A program made the position numbers and the translations under genes. The notes beneath the pieces were generated by a model that saw nothing but the letters and a program-made list of their open reading frames with translations, was not told where the DNA came from and searched no databases. Shown one piece after another: positions 508-64,000 of a stretch of DNA of 64,000 bases. The DNA comes from Macrostomum hystrix (taxonomy: Eukaryota; Animalia; Platyhelminthes). Within the stretch, counting starts at the first letter, position 1. Each line of letters starts with the position of its first letter. The stretch spans positions 24,738,001 through 24,802,000 of the forward strand of contig CATNEN010000001.1 of NCBI GenBank assembly GCA_950097015.1. Reading direction: 5' to 3'.

Positions 508-36739
<36,232 letters not shown>

Positions 36740-49100: not shown

Positions 49101-52100
49101 GAGATCATGACAGCCTGCTTTGACGTCTTCGTCTCATGGGACGACGAATACGACAAGCTTCAGGGCCTGCTGCGCGACTTGGTGAAGAAGAAGCGCGAGG
49201 AGATGATAAAAACTGTGTGGCGCATCAACCTTGCTCACAAGCGGCTGCAGACCAGGCTGGACCAGATGCGCAAGTTCCGGCACCAGCACGAACAGCTCAG
49301 ACAGGTTAGTTTTGCTTGCTTTCTAGCACCCTTATAGACACCAGCTTCTAGACATCCTGCGCAACCTTATCCTACTACTATCCAACTATCCGACTTCGCT
49401 TTTTCAGGTAATCGTTCGCGTTCTTCGTCCGCGCGGCCCCTCCAAAATTGAAGCCGCCGCCGCTGCTGCTGCCGCAGGTGGCTCCGACGAAGCTGGTGGC
49501 GACTCCAGCCCGGTGCAGGATGGCGGCCTGCCAGAGACGGCCGACTCCAACGCCTTCGAGGAGGTCAACTTGGCCTACGAGATTGTGAAAGAAGTTGACT
49601 GTTTGGAAGTGTCCAAGGAGGGCACAACGCTATGGGACGCTGCTATTCGACGCTACGAAGAGCGCATCGACCGCGTGGAAGCTCGCATCACCACCCGGCT
49701 GAGAGATCTGCTTGGCACTGCCAAGAATGCCAACGAGATGTTCCGCATCTTCAGCCGATTCAACGCCCTGCTGGTGCGCCCTCACATCCGTGGCGCTATT
49801 CGCGAGTATCAGACCCAGCTGATCCAGCGGGTCAAGGACGACATAGAGAAGCTGCACACCAAGTTCAAGGAGCAGTACTCTGACACAACGGCTTGCAAGA
49901 TGAGCCGCGTCAGAGACATCCCGCCAGTTGCCGGCTCCATCATCTGGGCCAAACAGATCGAGCGCCAGCTAAATGCCTATCTAAAGCGCGTGGAAGATGT
50001 GCTGGGCAAAGGCTGGGAGCATCACCTCGAAGGCCAGCAGTTAAAGAACGAAGGCGACAGCTTTAAGTCAAAGCTAAACACCAACGAGCTGTTCGAACAG
50101 TGGTCACAGAACATCAACCAAAAGCAACTGTCAATGACTGGCAAGATATTCAGCGTTGAAAGTGTCAAAAGGCAGGCTGGCGGCGGTGGCACGCTTTACC
50201 GTCTTAGGGTCAACTTTCAACCTGAGGTGATCACCCTGGCCAAGGAAGCCAGGAACATGCGCTGGCTCGGCTTCCGCGTGCCTCTAGGTATCGTTAACAA
50301 GGCCCACCAGGCTAATCAGCTATATCCCTACGCTGTTTCCCTGTGCGAGTCGGTCAAGTCCTACCAGAGCACGTGCTCTCGCATCGACTCCGAGCACGGC
50401 CAGGACGTTAATCTGCTCTGCGCCGGCCTGAGGCGCGAAGTCCAGCTGATCATCATGGAGGGCGCCACCCTAGTGTGGGAGTCCTACCGTCTAGATCCGT
50501 TCGTTCACAGGCTGGCCGACTCTGTCAACAACTATCAGGAGAAGACTGACGACCTACTGGCCATCACTCGCCAAATCGACGCCGAGATGGTTTCGCTTGA
50601 TACCTGCGGATTCTCAAAGCAGAACTTTACCGAAGTGATTAGCAAGATTCAGAAACAGATTGACGCTCTTAGTCTGCATGAATATGCTAACTTGTCACTG
50701 TGGGTATCCAAGCTAGACAAGGCTGTTGAAACTAAGCTGGCCGTTCGACTGGAGTCCGCCCTGAAAGCGTGGATTCGCATCCTCAAAGGCAACGTCAATC
50801 CCGAGGATGATGAAGTTGACGCATCAGTTGGCAGGCCTCAAATAAAGAAGATTGTACACGAGCTGCGGATTACCAACCAGCAGATGCACCTGCACCCAAG
50901 TTTGGAGGCCGCTCAACAGGAGCTTATGCACCAGCTGACACTGTGGCAGGAGAATGTCTCTAGCCTGCCACGCCTTAGCCACCAGCGCTACCAGGTCGGT
51001 CCCGCCCAGGTTGTGCAGCAGGAGCGCGATCGCACCTACGCCTCCGTGTTTAGCCGCCTATCTAATGCTGGCGAAGTGCTGGAGACTGCTCACGCGGAGA
51101 TTCAAAAGATTGTTCAGGAGGCTGAGGTGTACGTGACCACCTGGACTCGCTACCAAGCGCTGTGGGATCTGCAGCCTGACCAGGTTTATCCCAGGCTTGG
51201 CACGAATCCTGGCGTCTGGATGAATGTGTTGGACGAGATCAAAGCGATGCGGAAAACATTCGATGTGGCTGAGACCCAGAAAGAGTTCGGGCCGCTTGTG
51301 ATTCTGTTTGGCAAAGTGCAGGGCAAGGTGTCCATGAAGTACGATACCTGGCATAAGGATGTGCTAGGCAAGTTCGGCAACCTGATGTCCACACAGATGA
51401 ACACATTGTTCAGCGACATCTCGAAGGCGCGCAACAATCTCGAGCAGCAGCCGGGCGCGTCACCTGGCGCCAGCACTCAGGATGCTGTGGCTCTCATCAC
51501 ATATTCGCAAAGTCTCAAGCGTAAGATGAAGACCTGGGAGAAGACGGTTGAGCAGTGCCAAGCCGGCCAGGCTCTACTGTTCCGCGATCGATTCCAGTTC
51601 CCATCGGGCTGGCTGGACAGCGACCAGGTCACTGGCGAATGGTCGGCCCTCACCGACATTCTCAATCGCAAGACTCAGGCCATCTCTGGCCAAGTGGCTT
51701 CGCTTCAGGTCAAGATTGTGGCCGAGGATCGCCTGATTGAGGCCAAGACGTCTGATCTGCTGGCCGAGTGGGAGAAGCAGAAGCCGGTTGAAGGCGACTG
51801 CAAGCCGGACGAGGCGCTCCAGACACTCGCCATTCTGGAGGGAAAGCTGAGCCGGCTGCAGGAGGAGCGCCGCAATGTGCAGACGGCTAAAGAGGCCCTA
51901 GAACTGTCCGAGGGCGGTCCACCACCTAGCGAGGAGCGAGTCAAGGTTGCCACCGAGGAGCTGGCCGATCTGAAGGCTGTCTGGACCTCGCTAGGCAACG
52001 TGCACGACGATTTAACCGGCCTGCGAGACTCGCCCTGGCAGACTGTGCAGCCTAGGAAGCTGCGTCAGGATCTTGATGCGCTGGGCGCCCGCTTGAAGGA

Positions 52101-55100
52101 ACTGCCGGCAAGATTCCGCCAGTACGCCGCCTACACGCACCTGAAGAGTCGACTGAATAACCTCACCAAGGCAAATATGCTAGTTACCGAGCTGAAATCT
52201 GAGGCACTGAAGGAGCGCCACTGGAAGAACCTGCAGAAGCAGCTTGGAGTCACCTGGAACATGAACGACCTGTCTCTAGGCCAGCTGTGGGATCTTGATC
52301 TGCAAAAGAACGAATCTGTCATTCGCGATGTGCTCGCTGTGGCTCAAGGTGAGAAAGCCCTGGAAGAGTTCCTACGTCAGGTGACGGAGCTGTGGAAGGG
52401 CTACGAGCTGGAGTTGATCAGCTTCCAGAACAAGTGCCGACTGATCCGTGGCTGGGACGACCTGTTCAGCAAGGTCAAGGAGCATATGGCCAGCTTGAAT
52501 GCCATGAAGCTGTCGCCCTACTTCAAGCAATTCGAAGAGGAAGCCCTTGCCTGGGAAGATCGTCTGAACCGCATTAACGCTCTGTTTGACTGCTGGATCG
52601 ATGTGCAACGCCGCTGGGTTTACTTGGAGGGCATCTTCTCTGGCTCAGCCGACATCAAGACTCTCCTGCCCGTTGAGTCTCAGCGCTTTGCCAGCGTTAG
52701 CTCTGAATTCCTCGGCCTGATGAAAAAGGTTGCCAAGTCGCCGCTGATTATGGATGTGCTCAACATCCCGAATGCACAGAAGCAGCTGGAAAGGCTGGCT
52801 GATTTGCTAGCCAAAATCCAGAAGTCTCTCGGCGAGTATCTTGAGCGCCAGCGAGCCTCGTTCGCCCGCTTCTACTTTGTCGGTGACGAAGATCTGTTGG
52901 AGATCATAGGCAACAGCAAGAATGTGCACCGGCTGCAGAAGCACTTTAAGAAAATGTTTGCCGGAGTGCACACGCTTAAGCTGGACGAAGAGGCTACAGC
53001 TGTGTTTGGCCTCTGCTCCAAGGAGGGCGAAGAGGTGCCGTTTGTCACTCCGGTGTCTATCAAGGACAATCCGCGTATTAACGACTGGCTCACAATGGTG
53101 GAGAAGGAGATGCGCGTCACTCTGGCCAAGCTGCTGGCCAAGGCCACCCTCGGCCTGAAGGATGTCACGGCCAGTTCAGAGAACCGCGACGAAAAGTTTA
53201 TGGAATGGGCGGACACCTACCAGGCCCAGCTGGTCATCCTGGCTGCTCAGGTCATCTGGTCTGAGAGTGTTGAAGCCGCCCTGGCCTCTATTGACAAGGC
53301 TGGCGCCAAGACCAACCCGGACATGACTCCGATGGACACTGTGCTTAAGTCGGTCGAAGGCACTTTAAATCTGCTAGCGGACTCTGTTCTAAAGGAGCAG
53401 CCGCCTGTGCGTCGCAAGAAGCTTGAGCAGCTGATCATCGAGTACGTCCACCAGAGGGATGTCACGCGTCAGCTGATCGCCGACAAGATCGCGTCCAACA
53501 AGTCATTTGAATGGCTAGCCCAAATGCGATTCTACTTTGATCCAAAGCAGACTGATCCTCTCAAGCAGTTGATTATTCGGATTGCAAATGCTAGCTTTAA
53601 CTACGGCTTCGAGTACCTGGGCGTCGCTGAGCGTCTGGTGCAGACGCCACTGACTGACCGCTGCTACCTGACCATGACGCAGGCGCTCGAGGGTCGCCTT
53701 GGCGGCTCGCCATTCGGCCCGGCCGGCACCGGCAAGACCGAGTCCGTGAAGGCTCTTGGCAACCAGCTGGGACGCTTTGTGCTCGTGTTCAACTGCGACG
53801 AAACATTCGACTTCCAGGCTATGGGCCGCATCTTCGTCGGCCTCTGCCAGGTCGGCGCTTGGGGCTGCTTCGACGAGTTCAACCGGCTGGAGGAGCGCAT
53901 GCTGTCGGCTGTGTCTCAGCAGATCCAGGGCATCCAGATGGCACTCCGCGAGTACCTCACCGGCGATGCGAATGTGAAGCCCAAAGCTGAACTACTGGGC
54001 CGCGAGGTGCAGGTTCACCAGGACATGGCCGTCTTCATCACAATGAATCCGGGCTATGCCGGTCGTTCTAATCTACCCGACAATCTCAAGAAATTGTTCC
54101 GCTCTCTGGCCATGACCCAGCCGGACCGGCAGCTCATCGCCCAGGTCATGCTCTACTCGCAGGGCTTCCGCACCGCCGAGAAGCTCGCCGCCAAAGTGGT
54201 GCCATTCTTCAAGCTGTGCGCAGAGCAGCTCTCTGCCCAGAGTCACTACGATTTCGGCCTGCGCGCCCTGAAGAGCGTGCTAACTAGCGCCGGCAATGTG
54301 AAGCGCGACCGCATCCAGCAAATCAAGGCTGCTGCTGGCGACGATTACAATGAAGCCGAAGTTGCCTCGCGCCTGCCCGAGCAGGAGATCCTCATCCAGT
54401 CGCTCATGGAGACGATGGTGCCCAAGCTAGTCGCCGAGGATATTCCGCTGCTGTTCTCCCTTCTGTCTGATGTGTTTCCCGGCATTGACTATGTTCCAGC
54501 TGAGATGTCAGCTCTGCGCGCCGAGATACGCAAGGTGTGCGAAGAGATGCACCTGGTCTACGGCGAATCTGGCGAAGAAGGCGAACGCTGGGTGGAGAAG
54601 GTGCTTCAGGTGTACCAGATCACCAACATTCAGCACGGCCTGATGCTTGTCGGACCCAGCGGCTCCGGTAAAACCATGGCTTGGCGCGTGCTGCTCAAAG
54701 CGCTAGAGCGCCTTGAAGGCATCGAAGGTGTGGCCCACGTTATCGATCCCAAATCCATCAACAAAGACAATCTGTACGGCTTCATGGACCCCAACACGCG
54801 CGAATGGTTCGACGGTATTTTTACGCACACCCTGCGCAAGATTGTTGACAGCCTGCGCGGCGAGGCTGGAAAACGACAGTGGATCATCTTCGACGGCGAT
54901 GTTGACCCCGAGTGGGTGGAGAATCTCAACTCTGTGCTAGACGATAACAAACTGCTGACACTGCCGAACGGTGAGCGTCTCGGCATTCCGCCCAATGTGC
55001 GGATCATGTTCGAAGTGCAGGATCTGAAGTACGCCACCCTGGCCACCGTGTCCCGCTGCGGCATGGTCTGGTTCTCCGACGAGGTGCTCACCACCACCAT

Positions 55101-58100
55101 GGTGACTCACAATTATTTGAGCACATTGCGCAATGTTCCAGTCGATGAGTCTGAAGAAGGCTCAGTTCTGGACGTTCAGAAAAAACTGGCCGCGGTCTGG
55201 GAGCCGCAGCTACAGTCTGACGGCATCGTTATTCGCTGCCTGGGCGAGGCCGCCAAGCTTGACCACATCATGGACTTCAGCCGCATGCGCGCTCTGTCCT
55301 CTCTGTTCTCCATGCTGAACCAGAGCGCTAGAAATGTTGTGGCCTACAATGCCAGCCACCCGGACTTCCCCATGACTGACGAACAGATTGAATTATTCGC
55401 CAGCAAGTCTATTGTCGTATCGGTGGTCTGGGCCATGTCTGGCGATGGTAAGCTGCGCATTCGCGAACAACTCGGCGAATTCATTCGCGGCGTCTGCACC
55501 ATTCCCCTGCCGGCTGGCAATGCGCCACTCATTGATTACGAAGTCACAATTCAGGGCGAGTGGGCGCCCTGGGCCAACAAGGTACCGCAGATGGAGGTGG
55601 AGTCGCACAAGATCACGGCTACGGATGTGGTCATTCCAACTCTGGATACTGTTAGGCACGAGTGCCTGCTCAGCGGCTGGCTGGCTGAGCACAGACCGGT
55701 GCTTCTTTGCGGCCCACCCGGCTCTGGCAAGACCATGACACTATTTGCCGCTCTGCGCTCCCTACCCGACATGGAAGTTGTCGGCCTGAACTTTTCCAGC
55801 GCCACCACTCCGGAGCTGCTATTGAAGTCGTTCGATCAGTACTGCGAGTACAAGAAGACGCCAAATGGACTGGTGCTTGCGCCTCAGCAGCTCAACAAAT
55901 GGCTGGTGTTCTTCTGCGACGAAATTAACCTGCCAGACGAGGACTCCTACGGCACTCAGCGCGTTATCTCCTTCATCCGCCAGATGGTGGAGCACGGCGG
56001 CTTTCATCGCTGCACACCTGGCGATCTGCAGTGGGTGACTCTGGAACGCGTCCAGTTCGTTGGCGCCTGCAATCCGCCTACGGATCCGGGTCGCAAGCCG
56101 CTCTCGGCTCGCTTCATGCGCCACGTGCCCCTAGTCTATGTGGACTATCCGGGCCGCACTTCGCTAACCCAGATCTACGGCTCATTCAATAGGGCCATGC
56201 TGCGACAGCTGCCACCGTTGCGTCCATATGCTGATCCAATCACCAACGCCATGGTTGATTTCTTCCTGTTGTCTCAGGAGAGATTTACCGTTGACCAGCA
56301 GCCCCACTATGTGTACAGTCCGCGCGAGATGACCCGCTGGGTGCGCGGCATTCACGAAGCTCTGACTCAGGTGGACTCGCTGCCAGTCGAAGGCCTGGTC
56401 CGTATCTGGGCGCACGAGGCATTGCGACTGTTCCAGGATCGGCTGGTTGAGGACGGCGAGAGAAAGTGGACTGATGACACCATTGACCAGGTAATTGTGC
56501 TGATTTTTTTCATTTTGGATAATTTAATGAAGGTTGATTATTGTGCCTTTACGTTAGTTACTAAAGATTTAGTCATTAGCTTTCGTTAAACAAAATGATT
56601 AAACAAAACTCAATTCTGCAGGTGGCCGACAAGCACTTTCCGGGCATCAACAAACAGGAGGCCCTTCGTCGCCCGATTCTGTTCAGCAATTGGCTCACCA
56701 AAGAATACGGTCCAGTTGAACGGGAGCCTCTGCGAGACTATGTGCGCGCCAGGCTGAAGGTGTTCTACGAAGAGGAGCTAGATGTGCCCCTGGTGCTGTT
56801 CAACCAGGTGCTCGAGCACGTTCTGCGCATCGATCGGGTGTTCCGCCAGCCGCAGGGACACCTACTGCTTATCGGTGTTAGCGGCGCTGGCAAGACCACA
56901 CTGTCCCGCTTTGTTAGCTGGATCAATGGCCTGTCTGTGTTCCAGGTCAGCTTGCCCAGATTTTGCCGCTTGATATGAAACTAGGATTAGATAAAAATAT
57001 TAATCGGCTATAGGTTAGGCATTAGATTTAAATTGGGGATCTGGTAGAGGATGAGGATTCGATTTAAATTGGGGATTTGGTATAGGATAGGGATCAGATT
57101 GAAAATGGGGATTAGATTTAAAATGGGGATCTGTGATTGGATGTGGATTAGATTTAAAATAGGGATCTGGGATAGGATGGGGATTAGATTTAAAATGGGT
57201 ATCTAATATGGGATGGGAATTAGATTTAAAATAGGGATCTGGTATAGGATGGAGATTAGATTTAAAATGGGGATCTGTGATTGGATGGGGATTTGATTTA
57301 AAATGGAGATCTGCGTTAGGATATGGATTCGATTTAAGATAGGGATCTTTGATATGATAGGGGTTATATTAAATATAGGGATCTGTGATTGGATGGGAAT
57401 TCGATTTAAAATGGGAATCTTTGAGAAGATGAGGATTAATATATTTAAAATGAGGATGTGGGATATGATGGGGATTAGATTTAAAATATGGATCTGGGAT
57501 AGGATTGGGATTTGATCAATCAACAGTTCAAACAAGCCGAAATTGTGAAATAGGCAAGGAAAAGCAATCAGGAATCCCCAATCACAAAACTCGGTGACTA
57601 TTTCTCCCCCTGCTCAGGTAAAAGTACACAACAAGTACAGCGGCGAAGATTTCGACGAAGACCTGCGCTCCGTCCTGCGTCGCACCGGTTGCAAGGGCGA
57701 GAAAGTCACCTTCATCATGGACGAGTCGAATGTGAAGGACAGCAGCTTCCTGGAGCGAATGAACACCCTGCTGGCCAACGGAGAGGTGCCCGGACTGTTC
57801 GAGGGAGACGAGTTCCAGACCCTCATGACTCAGTGCAAGGAGGGCGCGGCCCGTGACGGCCTGATGCTCGATTCGCACGAGGAGCTCTACCGCTGGTTCA
57901 CTCAGCAGATCTGTCGCAATCTGCACGTTGTCTTCACAATGAACCCGAGTTCGGACGGTCTGAAGGATCGGGCCTCCACCTCGCCTGCGCTGTTTAACCG
58001 CTGCGTGCTAAACTGGTTCGGAGACTGGTCGCTTGAGGCCTACTTCCAGGTAATTGCATTCAGCTGAGCTATTAAAAGAGCTTAAGATAAACTTGGCATT

Positions 58101-61100
58101 GTAAGTAAGCATCTAAGAAATTGGATTTTAGCCAAGGGAAGTAGCAGAATTCTTCATTACTTAAGTCCAACTAGCTGACTGTAAAATTGGTATCAGCTTT
58201 AACTTATCTGGGGTAGCAGGTGTGTACATCTGCCCTGACCTTCTCATCGTCAGGCAGTGTACACTTTAACTGTTTTGCTTCGATGAATGTGACCTCGCCG
58301 CAGCTTCGAGCTCAGGACCTTAATTGCGACAGAGAACGGGTCGGACACTTCTTCCTTTCTCGTATATTAAAGATTTCACAATGCCACTCTGTTAACAGGT
58401 GGGCAAGGAGTTCACAGAGAAAGTGGATATGGACAAGCCTGACTACTCACTGCCCGACTATCCGCCACTGGCACTGGAGGGCCTGCCAACCAAGCCCAAC
58501 CATCGCGAGATGGTCAACAACGCCTTCGTGTTCGTGCACCAGACCCTGCACCAGGCTAATCAGCGGGTTGCTAAGCGCGGCGGTCGCGTGGCGGCCATCA
58601 CTCCGCGTCACTTCCTTGACTTCATTAATCACTACGTGAAGCTGACCAATGAGAAGCGGGCAGATCTGGAGGAGCAGCAGTTGCACCTGAACAAAGGCCT
58701 GACCAAGATTCGCGAGACAGTCGAACAGGTGGAGGTGATGCAATCCTCGCTCAGCCAGAAGCGCAGCGAATTGGAGCGTATGAACGAGCAGGCCAATCAG
58801 AAGCTCAAGCAGATGGTTCAGGATCAGCAGGTGGCTGAGGAGAGCAAGAAGAAAGGCGAGATGCTGCAGAAGAGCCTAGCTGAGAAGGAGGTCTTCATTG
58901 CTGAGAAGACTCGCGAGGTTACAGCGGAGCTCAGCCAGGTGGAGCCAGCTGTACAGGAGGCCAAGCAAGGTTAGCTCATTAGCTGTGCCATATTAATTTA
59001 CTTTGCTAATATTCGTTAGCTAATAGCGGGTGAGTTCAGTGGCGTAGACACGATTTTTTAAGGGGCCGGGGTCACCCTTACGCCCCTGGGTGAGTGCATC
59101 GTGCGTGGCAGAGCGTCTAACGCCTTGATTCCGCGGCGAGGCCACATTTATTAGGAGCTAGGTGCCCTGTATGAGTGTATGTCTGCGTACGGTATCCTAG
59201 TGTGTAAGCATGTATCCATGAGGCATTAGAATGGTTAAAATTGCCTCCTTGCGGGTCTTGTCGACATCAAATGATTGTGCCTGTGCATACAGCCTTCCTG
59301 AAAATATTATTGTTATTGTTATTTTGCATAGTTCTTACCGTGAAGGCTTGTCTTTATTTTGATGTACTTTAAACACGCGCGCGCAAATGCATCACCTCGA
59401 CATCACGAGATATCAATACTACTACTTGACCTAATGACTACTGCCCCACTGCAATTAATTTAAACTTAAGCCGTGAATGCGGTGACTCGGCAGCAGCTGG
59501 TTGAGGTTCGCACCCTGCCAAATCCGCCGCCATTGGTGAAGCTGGCTCTGGAATCAATCTGCACTATGCTGGGCGAGCCTACTCAGGATTGGAAATCTAT
59601 TCGCACAGTTCTTATGCGCGACAATTTTATTTCTCAGCTGCTCAATTATCAGACAGAAGATCTGAGGTGAGCAGTATTTAAAAAACGACAATTAACTCGC
59701 TAATCTGTGCTCTCGCCCCACCCTTTCCCTTTTCCCACCCGAAATCCCCAAACTGTGACTCAATGGCTCTGTCCCCAATCTATAGCCGTTGAGGGCATTA
59801 AGCGCAAGGACATTCAGGAGATCAAAGCCATGAAGAACCCGCCGATGGCGGTGAAAATGGCCGTGGAATCCATCTGTCTGCTGTTGGGCGAAAAGTCCAC
59901 GGACTGGAAGCAGATTCAGGGTGTCATTGTTAAAGACACTTTTGTGCCCAGTATTGTTAATTTTAAGACGCTGGAGATGCCGTAAGTTGAGCCACAGAGC
60001 CACCTAAGTAGTATTTATTAGCTGGGTGACCATTTTTCTTCGTTCTCTTATTGCGACGCTTATGGCAGTTGGACTAATTCACTTAGACACAAATGTTTGC
60101 GCTTAGAAGAAAATTTGCATTTAAACTGACTTCTGATTTGAAGTTTAATTTAATGAATAAGCAACAATAATGCATTATTTTTGCAATCCGAGTTGTTGCC
60201 AGGCAATATGTTCTAGCCATTAGAGCATATTTATAGTTCAAATTATAAGTCCGTTACCATCTGCCAATGCTCTTCTGCCAATTCGCACTTATTATATATA
60301 TATTCAATGACAACCCCATTGCATATATTGGTCATTATATTTATTGTAACACAAAGTCAATCAGTTATATTTTCATGCCATGGTTCTGGGGCATATTCAA
60401 GTATTTTTCTTATTCAATTGGTGATTTAAAGTTTTTTACCTTGCTAGATTACTTACAAGGCGGTAGTAGTTTTACTAGTATATATATGCTATAAAAAGCT
60501 AGACCACTAACGTCTTTGTATTCTCAGGTTCAGTTGTATGACAAGCATGCGTAAGTTAACGGCGGCAATTTAGGACCTCGAGTTTCTTTCAGCCCACTTG
60601 TCTTCCCTATATTTCTTCCTGACAAATGACCCCCTTCCCCAGCTTCCTTGCTGACAAATGACCCCCTTCCCCAGCTTCCTTGCTGACAAATGACCCCCTT
60701 CCCCAGCTTCCTTGCTAACAAATGACCCCCTTCCCCAGCTTCCTTGCTAACAAATGACCCCCTTCCCCAGCTTCCTTGCTGACAAATGACCCCCTTCCCC
60801 AGCTTCCTTGCTGACAAATGACCCCCTTCCCCAGCTTCCTTGCTAACAAATGACCCCCTTCCCCAGCTTCCTTGCTGACAAATGACCCCCTTCCCCAGTT
60901 GCTCAAGTATTTAGGACACAGGTACTTCAGTGTACAAATTAGCAGTCCGTCAGGCAGGCCCAGATATTCAGGATTGTTATTAATTATCTTCCGCCTTCAG
61001 CAGCACTGCCATAGCCACTGCCTCAGTTAATTATCCCTCTGTTATTTATTTATTAAGTGACAACATTCGCGAGACCATGAAGAAGAAGTACCTGTCCAAT

Positions 61101-64000
61101 CCGGACTACAACTTCGAGAAGGTCAACCGCGCCAGCGTTGCCTGCGGCCCCATGGTTAAATGGGCCATCGCCCAGATCAGCTACGCCGAGATGCTGCAGA
61201 AGGTCGAGCCGCTGAGGGCCGAGCTCAAGGCTCTTGAGGTGGAAGCCTCGGCAAATCGACAGAACGCCGAGGAGTGCCAGCGCGAGATCAGCCGCCTGGA
61301 GAAGAGCATCGCCAAGTACAAGGAGGAGTACGCCACCCTCATTAGCCAGGCTCAGGCTATCAAATCCGATCTGGCCTCCGTAGAGGCTAAGGTCAGCCGA
61401 TCTGTCGCTTTGCTATCGTCGCTTAGCAACGAAAAGAAGCGTTGGGAGAACGGCTCCGACGCGTTCAAAGCTCAAATGGAGACCATTGTTGGCGACTGTC
61501 TGCTTAGCTCGGCTTTCATGGCCTACGCTGGCTACTTTGATCAGCAGATGCGTACCACACTCTTCACCACCTGGTCTCATCACCTGCAGCAGGCTAATAT
61601 CAAGTACAGAGGCGATCTGGCTAGGGTTGAAGTGAGTCAGCGCACGCTTCTGCTATTATTTCTTGTTGCTATCGGTAGCTTTCTAATCGCATCCTCTTTT
61701 TTTTATCTCAAATTCCGAATCCTGATGAATCCAGTGAGCCGAAATGTGTATGACAAACTGCTCAGGTTAGACCACTAGATGCAATAGACTTTAGGTCATT
61801 AGATCTAATGATTCTGAAAAGCTTCTGTTTAGTCTCAAATCAAACTCGGCTGAAGCGTCTCGATGGAGCAGCGTTTGAGACCATTTTGAGCATGTTTACA
61901 CCATTGTGTTTAAAATTTCGTACTGAATGTAGTACTCGACATTCCAAACTCCTAAAATAAATTAATATAAAATGGTAGTTTTTCAGAACCTTGAGCACAT
62001 TGTGAGCCGCACTTGCTGCTCCTTTGGATTTATCTGGATAGCTCTATCATTGTTTTTCATATGCCACATTGGATCCCATTAATTAGACTAACGAATGATG
62101 CATAAAGTAGTGGACCGATTAGGCCTTTTAAAAAATAATGGGCCAATTTCAAGATGAGGTAATACTTATAATAAAATCTGATATCAGTTTGTTAAGGCTC
62201 GATTATTTGTCAACTAGACAATTGATTCCTATTTACCGAATGCTAATTAAACTTCTCCCTTGCAGTACCTGTCGAATCCTGACGAGCGACTCCGCTGGAC
62301 CTCCAACGCGCTGCCCTCCGACGACCTGTGCGTTGAGAACGCCATCATCCTGAAGCGATTCAATCGCTATCCGCTCATCATCGATCCGTCTGGCCAGGCC
62401 ACCGAGTTCATCGCCAACGAGTACAAGGGCAAGAAGATCACCCGGACCAGCTTCCTTGACGACGCCTTCCGCAAGACTCTGGAATCTGCTCTGCGCTTTG
62501 GCACCCCGCTTCTAGTGCAGGATGTGGAGAGCTACGATCCCATACTCAATCCAGTACTCAATAGGGAGGTCCGACGCACCGGCGGTCGCACCCTCATGAC
62601 GCTTGGAGATCAGGTATCATTAGCTATTTGTGCGATAATAAATGGCCTGTTTTGTGTGATAGTGAGTAGGTAGTCAAGTGGGATAATTAGAAGGTAGTTA
62701 ATTAGTGGGATAATAAATAGGCAGTTCAGTGGGATAATGAGTAGGCAGTTTAGTGGGATAATGAGTAGGCAGTTTAGTGGGATAATGAGTGGGCAGTTTA
62801 GTGGGATAATGAGTAGGCAGTTTAGTGGGATAATGAGTGGGCAGTTTAGTGGGATAATGAGTAGGCAGTTTAGTGGGATAATGAGTAGGCAGTTTAATAG
62901 GATAATTAATAAACAGTTATGTGGGATAATGAATATGTTGAGAAAGCCGGTATAATATAAGATAATATAATATAAGAAAAACACTAACCCGTACTTCACA
63001 ATAAACCCGCAGGACATCGACCTGTCGCCAACCTTCACCATCTTCCTATCGACTCGCGACCCATCCGTTGACTTCCCGCCGGATCTGTGCTCGCGCGTCA
63101 CTTTTGTCAACTTCACTGTGACTCGGAGCTCACTGCAGAATCAGTGCCTTAACGCTGTCCTGCAGGCTGAGCGACCCGATGTGGACAAGAAGCGCGGCGA
63201 CCTGCTGCGGATGCAGGGCGAGTTCCAGGCCCGACTGCGCCAGCTGGAGCAGGAGCTGCTGCGGGCTCTCAGCGCCGCCCAGGGCAACATTCTCAATGAT
63301 GACGCAATCATTACTCAGCTGGAGACGCTGAAGAAGGAGGCTGCCGAAGTGTCCGCTAAGGCAGCGGAGGCCGACCAGGTGAGAATAGTTCTGAGTCTGT
63401 GTAATTCAAACTAAACTAACTAAACTGGGACGCGTTGTAGCCTAATGCTTAGAGGACTCACCATTTTAAGGTCGGAGGTTCTATTCCCGTCATTTAGCAA
63501 GATACTTAACTCTGCATGGCTTCAGTTCCCCAGTACCCATTTAACAGCTGCATTAGCTGGGGGTAATTGAGGGTGGGTGTGGCGTCCCCCCAGTCCATGG
63601 ACTGAACAGCCGTACGCAGCTTTCAGATGCGCCACGCAGTGTTGTCGGTTGCATATCTGATCTGATTGGGGCCGATTTAATTAATTATTATTTATAATTC
63701 AACTATTTACATTTTTTACATTTACATTTTAGAATAAACATTTCTTAATGTTTTGTTTCCTCTACTACTTCCCAGGTCATGGAGGAGGTGGACACCGTCA
63801 GCCGTCAGTACCAGCCGTTGGCGCAGAGCTGCTCGGCCATTTTCTTCACTTTGGAAGGCCTCAGCCAGCTGCACTCGCTCTATCACTACTCGCTGCAGTT
63901 CTTCCTGTCTATGTTTAACGCCGCCCTGCACACCCAGGGCCTTCAGGGTCTGACAGAGCCAGCTAAACGACTGGAAGTGATCACAGCCTCTCTGTTCCGT
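39914..64000 (+). CDS. DYNC1H1: Cytoplasmic dynein 1 heavy chain, spliced, 3'-truncated by the window
   Basis: Exons 39914-40154, 44042-44129, 44230-44403, 46006-46261, 48645-49304, 49408-56490, 56622-56945, 57618-58049, 58399-58969, [59471-59666 or 59786-59981], 61058-61631, 62266-62613, 63013-63378, 63776-end. P-loops [32 protein letters not shown]; dynein-1 tail motifs [13 protein letters not shown] and [13 protein letters not shown]. Confidence 0.97.
40769..42253. mobile_element. AT-rich non-autonomous TIR DNA transposon relic, ~1.5 kb
   Basis: Inverted termini AGCTGGGTAATTCCATAAGA / TCTCATGGAATTAGCCAGCT; internal repeated ACGACC(A/G)TCA motifs. Confidence 0.65.
44042..46261 (+). CDS. 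DYNC1H1: DYNC1H1 exons 2-4 (44042-44129, 44230-44403, 46006-46261)
   Basis: [21 protein letters not shown]; [15 protein letters not shown]; phases 1/2/2/0 consistent. Confidence 0.9.
46291..47210. mobile_element. Second, diverged copy of the 34630 MITE, interrupted by another element
   Basis: ttaacagt terminus; shared tttgtgagcagaa...tgcctat and ttgaatatctcgac...gttttgtgattctgga blocks. Confidence 0.6.
46646..47065. mobile_element. CCC...GGG-terminated MITE with 2-bp (TT) TSD, possibly CACTA/EnSpm-type
   Basis: Termini cccgctaaaaaat / attttttacaggg; internal 22-bp inverted repeat 46851-46872 vs 46909-46930. Confidence 0.55.
47899..48266 (+). mobile_element. SINE family 1, full length
   Basis: Perfect 12-bp TSD ATGCTTGGGACC (47887-47898 / 48267-48278), (ATT)n tail. 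Confidence 0.93.
48645..49304 (+). CDS. DYNC1H1: DYNC1H1 exon 5 (tail)
   Basis: [24 protein letters not shown]...HEQLRQ. Confidence 0.95.
49408..56490 (+). CDS. DYNC1H1: DYNC1H1 exon 6, 7083 nt (tail, linker, AAA1-AAA3)
   Basis: ORF 49513..56589; starts VIVRVLRP, ends cag|gtaatt. Confidence 0.97.
56622..58969 (+). CDS. DYNC1H1: DYNC1H1 exons 7-9 (56622-56945, 57618-58049, 58399-58969): AAA4 and stalk CC1
   Basis: GVSGAGKT; [18 protein letters not shown]; coiled coil ending [10 protein letters not shown]. Confidence 0.95.
57015..57512. repeat. Degenerate ~36-bp tandem repeat (GGATTAGATTTAAAATGGGGATCTG...)
   Basis: Motif recurs through the intron. Confidence 0.8.
59088..59320 (+). mobile_element. 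Degenerate SINE family 1 remnant
   Basis: gtggcagagcg, gattccgcggcgaggccacattt, aattgcctcct, tail. Confidence 0.6.
59471..59666 (+). CDS. DYNC1H1: DYNC1H1 exon 10A, microtubule-binding domain variant A
   Basis: taag acceptor, AG|gtgagc donor, 196 nt, phase 1-2. Confidence 0.9.
59786..59981 (+). CDS. DYNC1H1: DYNC1H1 exon 10B, microtubule-binding domain variant B
   Basis: tatag acceptor, CC|gtaagt donor, 196 nt, phase 1-2. Confidence 0.9.
60618..60899. repeat. 32-bp minisatellite (GACAAATGACCCCCTTCCCCAGCTTCCTTGCT), about 9 copies
   Basis: Period 32 (60621/60653). Confidence 0.95.
61058..64000 (+). CDS. DYNC1H1: DYNC1H1 exons 11-14 (61058-61631, 62266-62613, 63013-63378, 63776-end): end of MTBD, CC2, AAA5, buttress
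   Basis: [35 protein letters not shown]; [12 protein letters not shown]; [11 protein letters not shown]. Confidence 0.95.
62660..62935. repeat. 24-bp minisatellite (AGTGGGATAATGAGTAGGCAGTTT)
   Basis: Seen directly. Confidence 0.9.
63427..63700 (+). mobile_element. SINE family 2 (CORE-like), uninterrupted diverged copy
   Basis: tagcctaatgcttaga head, agcaagatacttaactc, and shared gagggtgggtgtggcgtccccccagtccatggactg block. Confidence 0.72.

Follow-up and report, generated by a model that had tools for sequence, protein, structure and literature searches.

The diversity of cytoplasmic dynein-1 is usually credited to accessory chains and cargo adaptors, and a single heavy chain is assumed. In the arthropod Mhc exon clusters, variants of another motor are made from alternative exons, and a functional difference between these variants is established. 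The Mhc clusters consist of tandem homologous exons that swap structural parts of the motor domain and tune its mechanochemistry (PMC3228551). In dynein, a mutually exclusive exon was predicted in SmDHC1 of Schistosoma mansoni (Pillmann et al. 2011, BMC Bioinformatics 12:270, PMC3228551). This candidate is as long as the exon it would replace, strongly homologous to it and bounded by split codons on both sides, and its position is given only as 'the middle of the gene'. Kollmar 2016 (PMC5100056) cited the exon again, and neither paper brings up the microtubule-binding domain (MTBD), RNA evidence or other flatworms. A full-text literature search found no further work on alternative exons of the dynein-1 MTBD beyond these two papers. 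Here we report on two tandem exons, A and B, in a dynein heavy chain gene of Macrostomum hystrix. They lie in a stretch of 64,000 nucleotides (hereafter the window; assembly GCA_950097015.1, contig CATNEN010000001.1, positions 24,738,001 to 24,802,000, forward strand). A first-pass annotation of the window had proposed them as mutually exclusive and had guessed that flatworm DHC1 exons of this kind might already be in the literature, which the prediction in S. mansoni bears out. Credit for the first notice of a mutually exclusive exon in a flatworm DHC1 belongs to Pillmann et al. 2011.

Our analysis indicates, with a probability of roughly 85%, that A and B are an ancient mutually exclusive pair in the sole dynein-1 heavy chain gene, which would encode two chains differing in the end of the first coiled-coil helix of the stalk (CC1) and in helices H1-H4 of the MTBD. 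The case resembles SmDHC1 in that a flatworm DHC1 has an extra homologous exon of equal length judged to be mutually exclusive, and differs from it in that location in the MTBD, RNA evidence and orthology across species are added in Macrostomum. The exon of S. mansoni is very probably the same one, because the neodermatan Protopolystoma xenopodis has the same A/B pair. The Macrostomum pair is therefore best seen as a better-documented case of what had been predicted for a fluke. It shares with the arthropod Mhc clusters the swapping of defined parts of a motor domain by tandem homologous exons, but motor and filament are different, and dynein has a single cluster of two exons that swaps the filament-binding helices.

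The exons and their neighbours are arranged in the window as follows.

58399-58969, forward strand: constitutive upstream exon, stalk CC1, ending in phase 1 (edge ...gccaagcaag/gt)
58970-59470, forward strand: intron spliced out in RNAs with exon A (gt...ag)
59471-59666, forward strand: exon A, 196 nt, A-type CC1 end and MTBD H1-H4 (edges ag/cc...ag/gtgagc)
59667-59785, forward strand: A-B intron, 119 nt, between the two alternative exons
59786-59981, forward strand: exon B, 196 nt, B-type CC1 end and MTBD H1-H4 (edges ag/cc...cc/gtaagt)
59982-61057, forward strand: intron 3' of exon B (gtaagt...ag)
61058-61300, forward strand: start of the constitutive downstream exon (MTBD H5-H6, then CC2), preceded by ag, its first base completing a split codon

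Both exons are entered in phase 1 and left in phase 2, with open frames and canonical AG/GT sites. Two bases complete a split codon at the start of each, and two bases open another at the end. The sequence thus agrees with the tandem 196-nt exons that had been proposed, and the translations are identical to the peptides given for them. A and B share 25 of 64 residues over whole codons, which with the common split-codon Ala gives the 26 of 66 (39%) counted earlier; BLASTP aligns them with 24 of 61 residues identical (E 4e-22). Equal length, equal phases, splice sites and homology are what is expected of a mutually exclusive exon cluster, and all are present here. Because 196 is not a multiple of three, an RNA that contained both exons or neither would run into an early stop. 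Read from the sequence, the third codon of B becomes a TGA when A is joined to B, and skipping of both exons leads to a TGA 7 codons into the downstream exon, as the predicted frameshift for both or neither required. The introns of this region also contain tandem arrays. A 32-nt unit (CTTGCTGACAAATGACCCCCTTCCCCAGCTTC) is repeated 8.9 times with 98% identity at 60615-60898 in the intron 3' of exon B, and further intronic arrays are found at 57009-57516 (unit of 36 nt) and 62649-62932 (unit of 24 nt). An Rfam scan of 57000-62000 gave no match.

The two exons belong to one gene. In the 220-Mb assembly (42 contigs), each exon matches itself once and its neighbour at about 40% identity, and the remaining matches, short and no more than 44% identical, are to other classes of dynein. 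No second dynein-1 gene was found when this assembly was searched with A and B. There is a single dynein-1 gene with one copy of each exon. An assembly artefact, or a placement of A and B in two paralogous genes, can be regarded as already refuted: the exons are only 39% identical, they occur singly, 119 nt apart in one gene, and spliced RNA contigs link both of them to one upstream exon.

RNA evidence came from four public runs of two studies, taken as assembled contigs and compared over 57590-60590, a stretch that ends before the 32-nt repeat. Runs X3 and X4 contain 8.8- and 10-kb contigs from which the GT..AG intron 58050-58398 has been spliced out. They stop exactly at 58969, which is what a branch point in the assembly graph would produce. 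Separate 252-nt contigs link 58969 to exon A, with depths of 20.9 (X3) and 41.4 (X4), through the joint 58969>59471 (displayed as 58966>59468, cut +3). The joint 58969>59786 to exon B (displayed as 58967>59784, cut +2) was found in the same runs with depths of 9.7 (X3) and 17.5 (X4). The ratio of A to B is thus about 2:1 (about 70:30) in contig depth, which is a poor measure of expression. In X3, the depths of A and B together (20.9 + 9.7) approximate the constitutive depth of 31.5. Downstream, an A contig of run X1 runs past 59666 into TGACAACATTCGCGAGACC, the sequence from 61058 on. B contigs of the same run depart from the genome at 59981 and extend for 30-55 nt, indicating that the B donor is used. 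No joint 59666>59786 from A to B is listed among the RNA contigs over the compared stretch, and contigs can miss rare forms. Both exons are thus spliced in at substantial depth and through separate joints, as mutually exclusive use predicts. Contigs of low depth (3-6) in the introns, including an unspliced one at 59672-59813, look like precursor RNA.

The intron 58050-58398 also contains a hairpin-like element of about 55 nt at 58217-58273 (GTGTGTACATCTGCCCTGAC...GTCAGGCAGTGTACAC). A great many RNA contigs whose flanks are unrelated contain a match to it, with a summed depth of 3154-4932 in X3 and X4. The element resembles a short dispersed inverted repeat present in many transcripts.

Exclusive use of A or B is enforced at least by the reading frame, and aberrant RNAs with A and B together or with both skipped would presumably be removed by nonsense-mediated decay. 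A steric block may act in addition. In alpha-tropomyosin, exons 2 and 3 are kept apart sterically, because the distal branch point lies near a donor. The only YTNAY motifs of the A-B intron, ttaac and ctaat, lie at 59692-59704, that is 28-36 nt past the A donor and 83-91 nt before the B acceptor, with a pyrimidine-rich run between them and the acceptor. A branch point of exon B at this site might be too near the A donor to let that donor pair with the B acceptor. The likeness to alpha-tropomyosin lies in the two-exon cluster, in the distance of the branch-point-like motifs from the A donor and in the long pyrimidine-rich run; the difference is that the dynein branch point is predicted from motifs alone. 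Docking and selector sequences of the Dscam type also lead to a mutually exclusive choice. A search of inverted repeats around A and B found no convincing RNA pairing of this type and no clear docking site, and yielded nothing beyond weak, AT-rich inverted repeats 12-14 nt long. Among these, 59454-59467 pairs with 60141-60154 (14 nt, 93%) and 59412-59423 with 60007-60018 (12 nt, 92% complementarity), so that the region just 5' of the A acceptor is linked to the intron 3' of B. These repeats may be due to chance, or may form a loop that influences which exon is chosen.

Among solved structures, A and B each align best to residues 3296-3358 of human DYNC1H1, with E values of 1e-18 to 1e-21 and about 60% identity of each exon to the mammalian sequence. 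Matches in PDB to axonemal chains have E values of 3e-5 or weaker, and those to dynein-2 of about 0.7-0.9. The downstream exon matches Pfam PF12777 (dynein MT-binding stalk, E 6.8e-5), the upstream open frame of 2358 residues at 49513-56589 has the AAA+ P-loops of a dynein motor, and the flanking exons match the coiled-coil stalk of a dynein heavy-chain model from a monogenean, closely enough to accord with a flatworm source. Judged from these matches, the gene is a cytoplasmic dynein-1 heavy chain gene and not one for dynein-2 or an axonemal chain. Helices were mapped on the predicted fold of the database protein P0125, a dynein-1 piece of 498 residues with a B-type exon. In this model the exon corresponds to residues 205-270, where CC1 completes its last turn and the four short helices H1-H4 follow. 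The next exon holds H5, H6 and CC2, and long coiled-coil helices flank the six-helix knob. The helices of the MTBD that contact the microtubule are H1, H3 and H6 (PMC4298687, PMC7042235). According to the model, the swap between A and B alters two of the three contact helices, H1 and H3, and leaves H6 and CC2 constant. The assignment of the segment to the CC1 end and H1-H4 that had been given in the first-pass annotation thus stands on both the DYNC1H1 alignment and the P0125 model, with the refinement that H6 and CC2 are not swapped. Each mRNA would carry either A or B, giving two heavy chains with H5, H6 and CC2 in common.

The pair is also old. In P0180, an NCBI gene model of P. xenopodis (Monogenea, Neodermata), an A-type exon is followed directly by a B-type exon. 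Exon A is 64% identical to the first copy and 40% to the second, and exon B is 45% identical to the first and 76% to the second. Because these matches are reciprocal, the tandem exon duplication that gave rise to A and B predates the split between Macrostomorpha and Neodermata, and both copies have been kept since then in unchanged order. Short exon open reading frames (ORFs) of B-type, 70-79% identical to B and sharing the hallmarks of B, are present in ENA/Logan contigs. With the pair in P. xenopodis, they support the proposal of an old duplication maintained by selection. A full HMMER scan with exon A gave only matches of 65% identity or less. In a weakly resolved tree of 172 exon peptides and 64 columns, which included loci L035, L037 and L041, B clusters with six other B-type sequences (SH-aLRT, a likelihood-ratio branch support, 98) and A is placed elsewhere.

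One of the exons might instead be a relic of the duplication, its inclusion being splicing noise without function, with the other form alone making a working dynein. Features of either exon could be cited for this, namely the long branch of A in the tree (0.39) with no close short relatives of A found in a word-index search, and the loss from B of an arginine that is otherwise invariant. However, A and B have open frames and canonical splice sites and conform to the alignment at all 17 of its invariant columns, and both have substantial RNA depth at about 70:30. Moreover, both types are found in the same order in a monogenean, and B-type exons are conserved at 70-79% in several other organisms. 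We regard a relic as very improbable, and the retention of two used exons as the better account of the data.

Residues were compared among A-type sequences (n=2), B-type sequences (n=7) and single-copy metagenome loci (n=47), with L035, L037 and L041 excluded. A-type and B-type differ at 25 type-specific columns. In human numbering, A-type keeps Q3302, an H3303-like residue, L3304 and V3305, which are present in 44, 35, 47 and 42 of the 47 single-copy loci, respectively, and R3339 and I3348, both of which are present in all 47. Its main oddity is CTML in place of CLLL. In B-type, H1 has K-D-I-Q (Q>K, H>D, L>I, V>Q) and a lysine or arginine stands immediately before the NPP motif. At R3339 (mouse R3337), in H3, A-type and 47/47 single-copy loci have arginine, and 7/7 B-type sequences have glutamine or leucine: Q in exon B of Macrostomum and L in the other six. 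R3344 is mostly K in B-type, and the position of mouse K3299 is basic in both forms. Mouse R3337 has been named a likely partner of beta-tubulin D163, and K3299 a partner of D427 (Lacey et al. 2019, PMC6629372). Net charge over the 64 whole codons is -1 in A and +2 in B. Modelling studies tie the charge of the MTBD to affinity and run length (PMC4987762, PMC9117880). A-type keeps the near-invariant residues of single-copy dyneins, and B-type is the derived form. From the residue and charge changes of B-type, the B form is likely to have a changed microtubule affinity or selectivity. The two track-binding surfaces and the A/B heterodimers suggested by the first-pass annotation remain inference.

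The two forms could also be biochemically equivalent, the pair being kept as a splicing arrangement that is hard to lose. This would be neutral subfunctionalisation, for example by tissue-specific splicing factors. Most contact residues are kept in both forms (the two basic residues and the glutamate of H1, DWK, and R/K at human 3344), which would fit equivalence. It does not readily explain the 25 type-specific columns, several of them at positions that are invariant or nearly so in the 47 single-copy loci. The B-specific states are also conserved from Macrostomum to Neodermata, which fits a maintained specialised form and not drift. Equivalence is thus an unlikely explanation, though one of some weight, and a specialised B form is preferred.

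Several points weigh against the reading of A and B as an exclusive pair that makes two different motors. The RNA evidence consists of assembled contigs, not reads, and does not allow a judgement on tissue patterns, exact ratios or rare forms with both exons or neither. The sum of A and B depths in X4 exceeds the constitutive depth. Either exon had been predicted to join 58969 to 61058, and the RNA contigs contain the joints 58969>A, 58969>B and A>61058; the joint B>61058 was not seen directly, as the compared stretch ended at 60590 and displayed only the use of the B donor. The steric block was derived from the positions of the motifs alone. The P0125 model is of moderate confidence (mean pLDDT, a per-residue confidence score, 66.6; 72-80 over the exon).

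Tandem copies of this exon are not restricted to flatworms. A pattern scan of metagenome contigs found 80 dynein-1 MTBD loci, and most of the intron-bearing ones have the same 196-nt exon with the same boundaries; this survey of boundaries included L035, L037 and L041. The MTBD exon peptide of these three loci is identical to that of mammalian DYNC1H1, possibly from human or other mammalian contamination. With these three excluded, 33 of the loci with both flanking exons have one copy and 3 have two copies. When loci that lack a flank are included, about eight distinct metagenome eukaryotes have two tandem copies, in the following loci.

L024-26, L036, L038, L044, L045, L047, L059/L082 and L102 (metagenome contigs): two-copy loci

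In seven groups (L026, L036, L038, L044, L045, L047 and L059) both copies are 196 or 199 nt long with ag/gtaag sites; at its shortest, in L036, the intervening intron measures 65 nt. Some copies have an SNF/TNF insertion and are similar to P0182, an annotated dynein from the beetle Popillia japonica, and because of this similarity the loci that carry them are probably from arthropods. In the related loci L036, L045 and L047, identity among the first copies is 79-88% and among the second copies 65-80%, with a ratio of nonsynonymous to synonymous substitutions (dN/dS) of 0.03-0.18 and dS near saturation. A gene model of the teleost Coryphaenoides rupestris (KAG7247558.1, P0013) also has two tandem copies of the MTBD exon, and exon ORFs of its second-copy type are on hundreds of Logan contigs. 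Identity between the copies of one gene ranges from 81% (arthropod-like) down to 39-42% (flatworms). The tree of 64 columns cannot decide between a single old duplication and repeated duplication across phyla. As a tentative and somewhat doubtful extension, the H1-H4 exon may be a recurrent hot spot of tandem duplication across animals, and the flatworm B exon may provide a cell-specific motor with altered affinity or altered selectivity for tubulin isotypes or modifications. The HMMER scan with exon A also returned five proteins that are not dyneins (P0014, P0022, P0102, P0070 and P0135; 386-937 residues). They contain 2-5 tandem MTBD-like units with the pattern ...L.E[LV][RK]SF.NPP..VK...LLG... 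and look like stand-alone arrays of dynein-MTBD-like domains.

Our study indicates that the part of dynein-1 that touches the microtubule comes in two versions, which are conserved across deep flatworm lineages and both expressed. The A/B pair amounts to a natural domain swap in which H1 and H3 vary, H6 and the stalk are fixed, and the B form is without the arginine reported to contact tubulin. It offers a direct route to understanding how the sequence of the MTBD sets affinity, run length and the preference for subsets of microtubules. The teleost gene model and the tandem copies in metagenomes suggest that the question extends past flatworms. If the H1-H4 exon is indeed a hot spot of duplication across animals, track-binding isoforms of the heavy chain would add to dynein-1 regulation a level that is widespread and has been overlooked.

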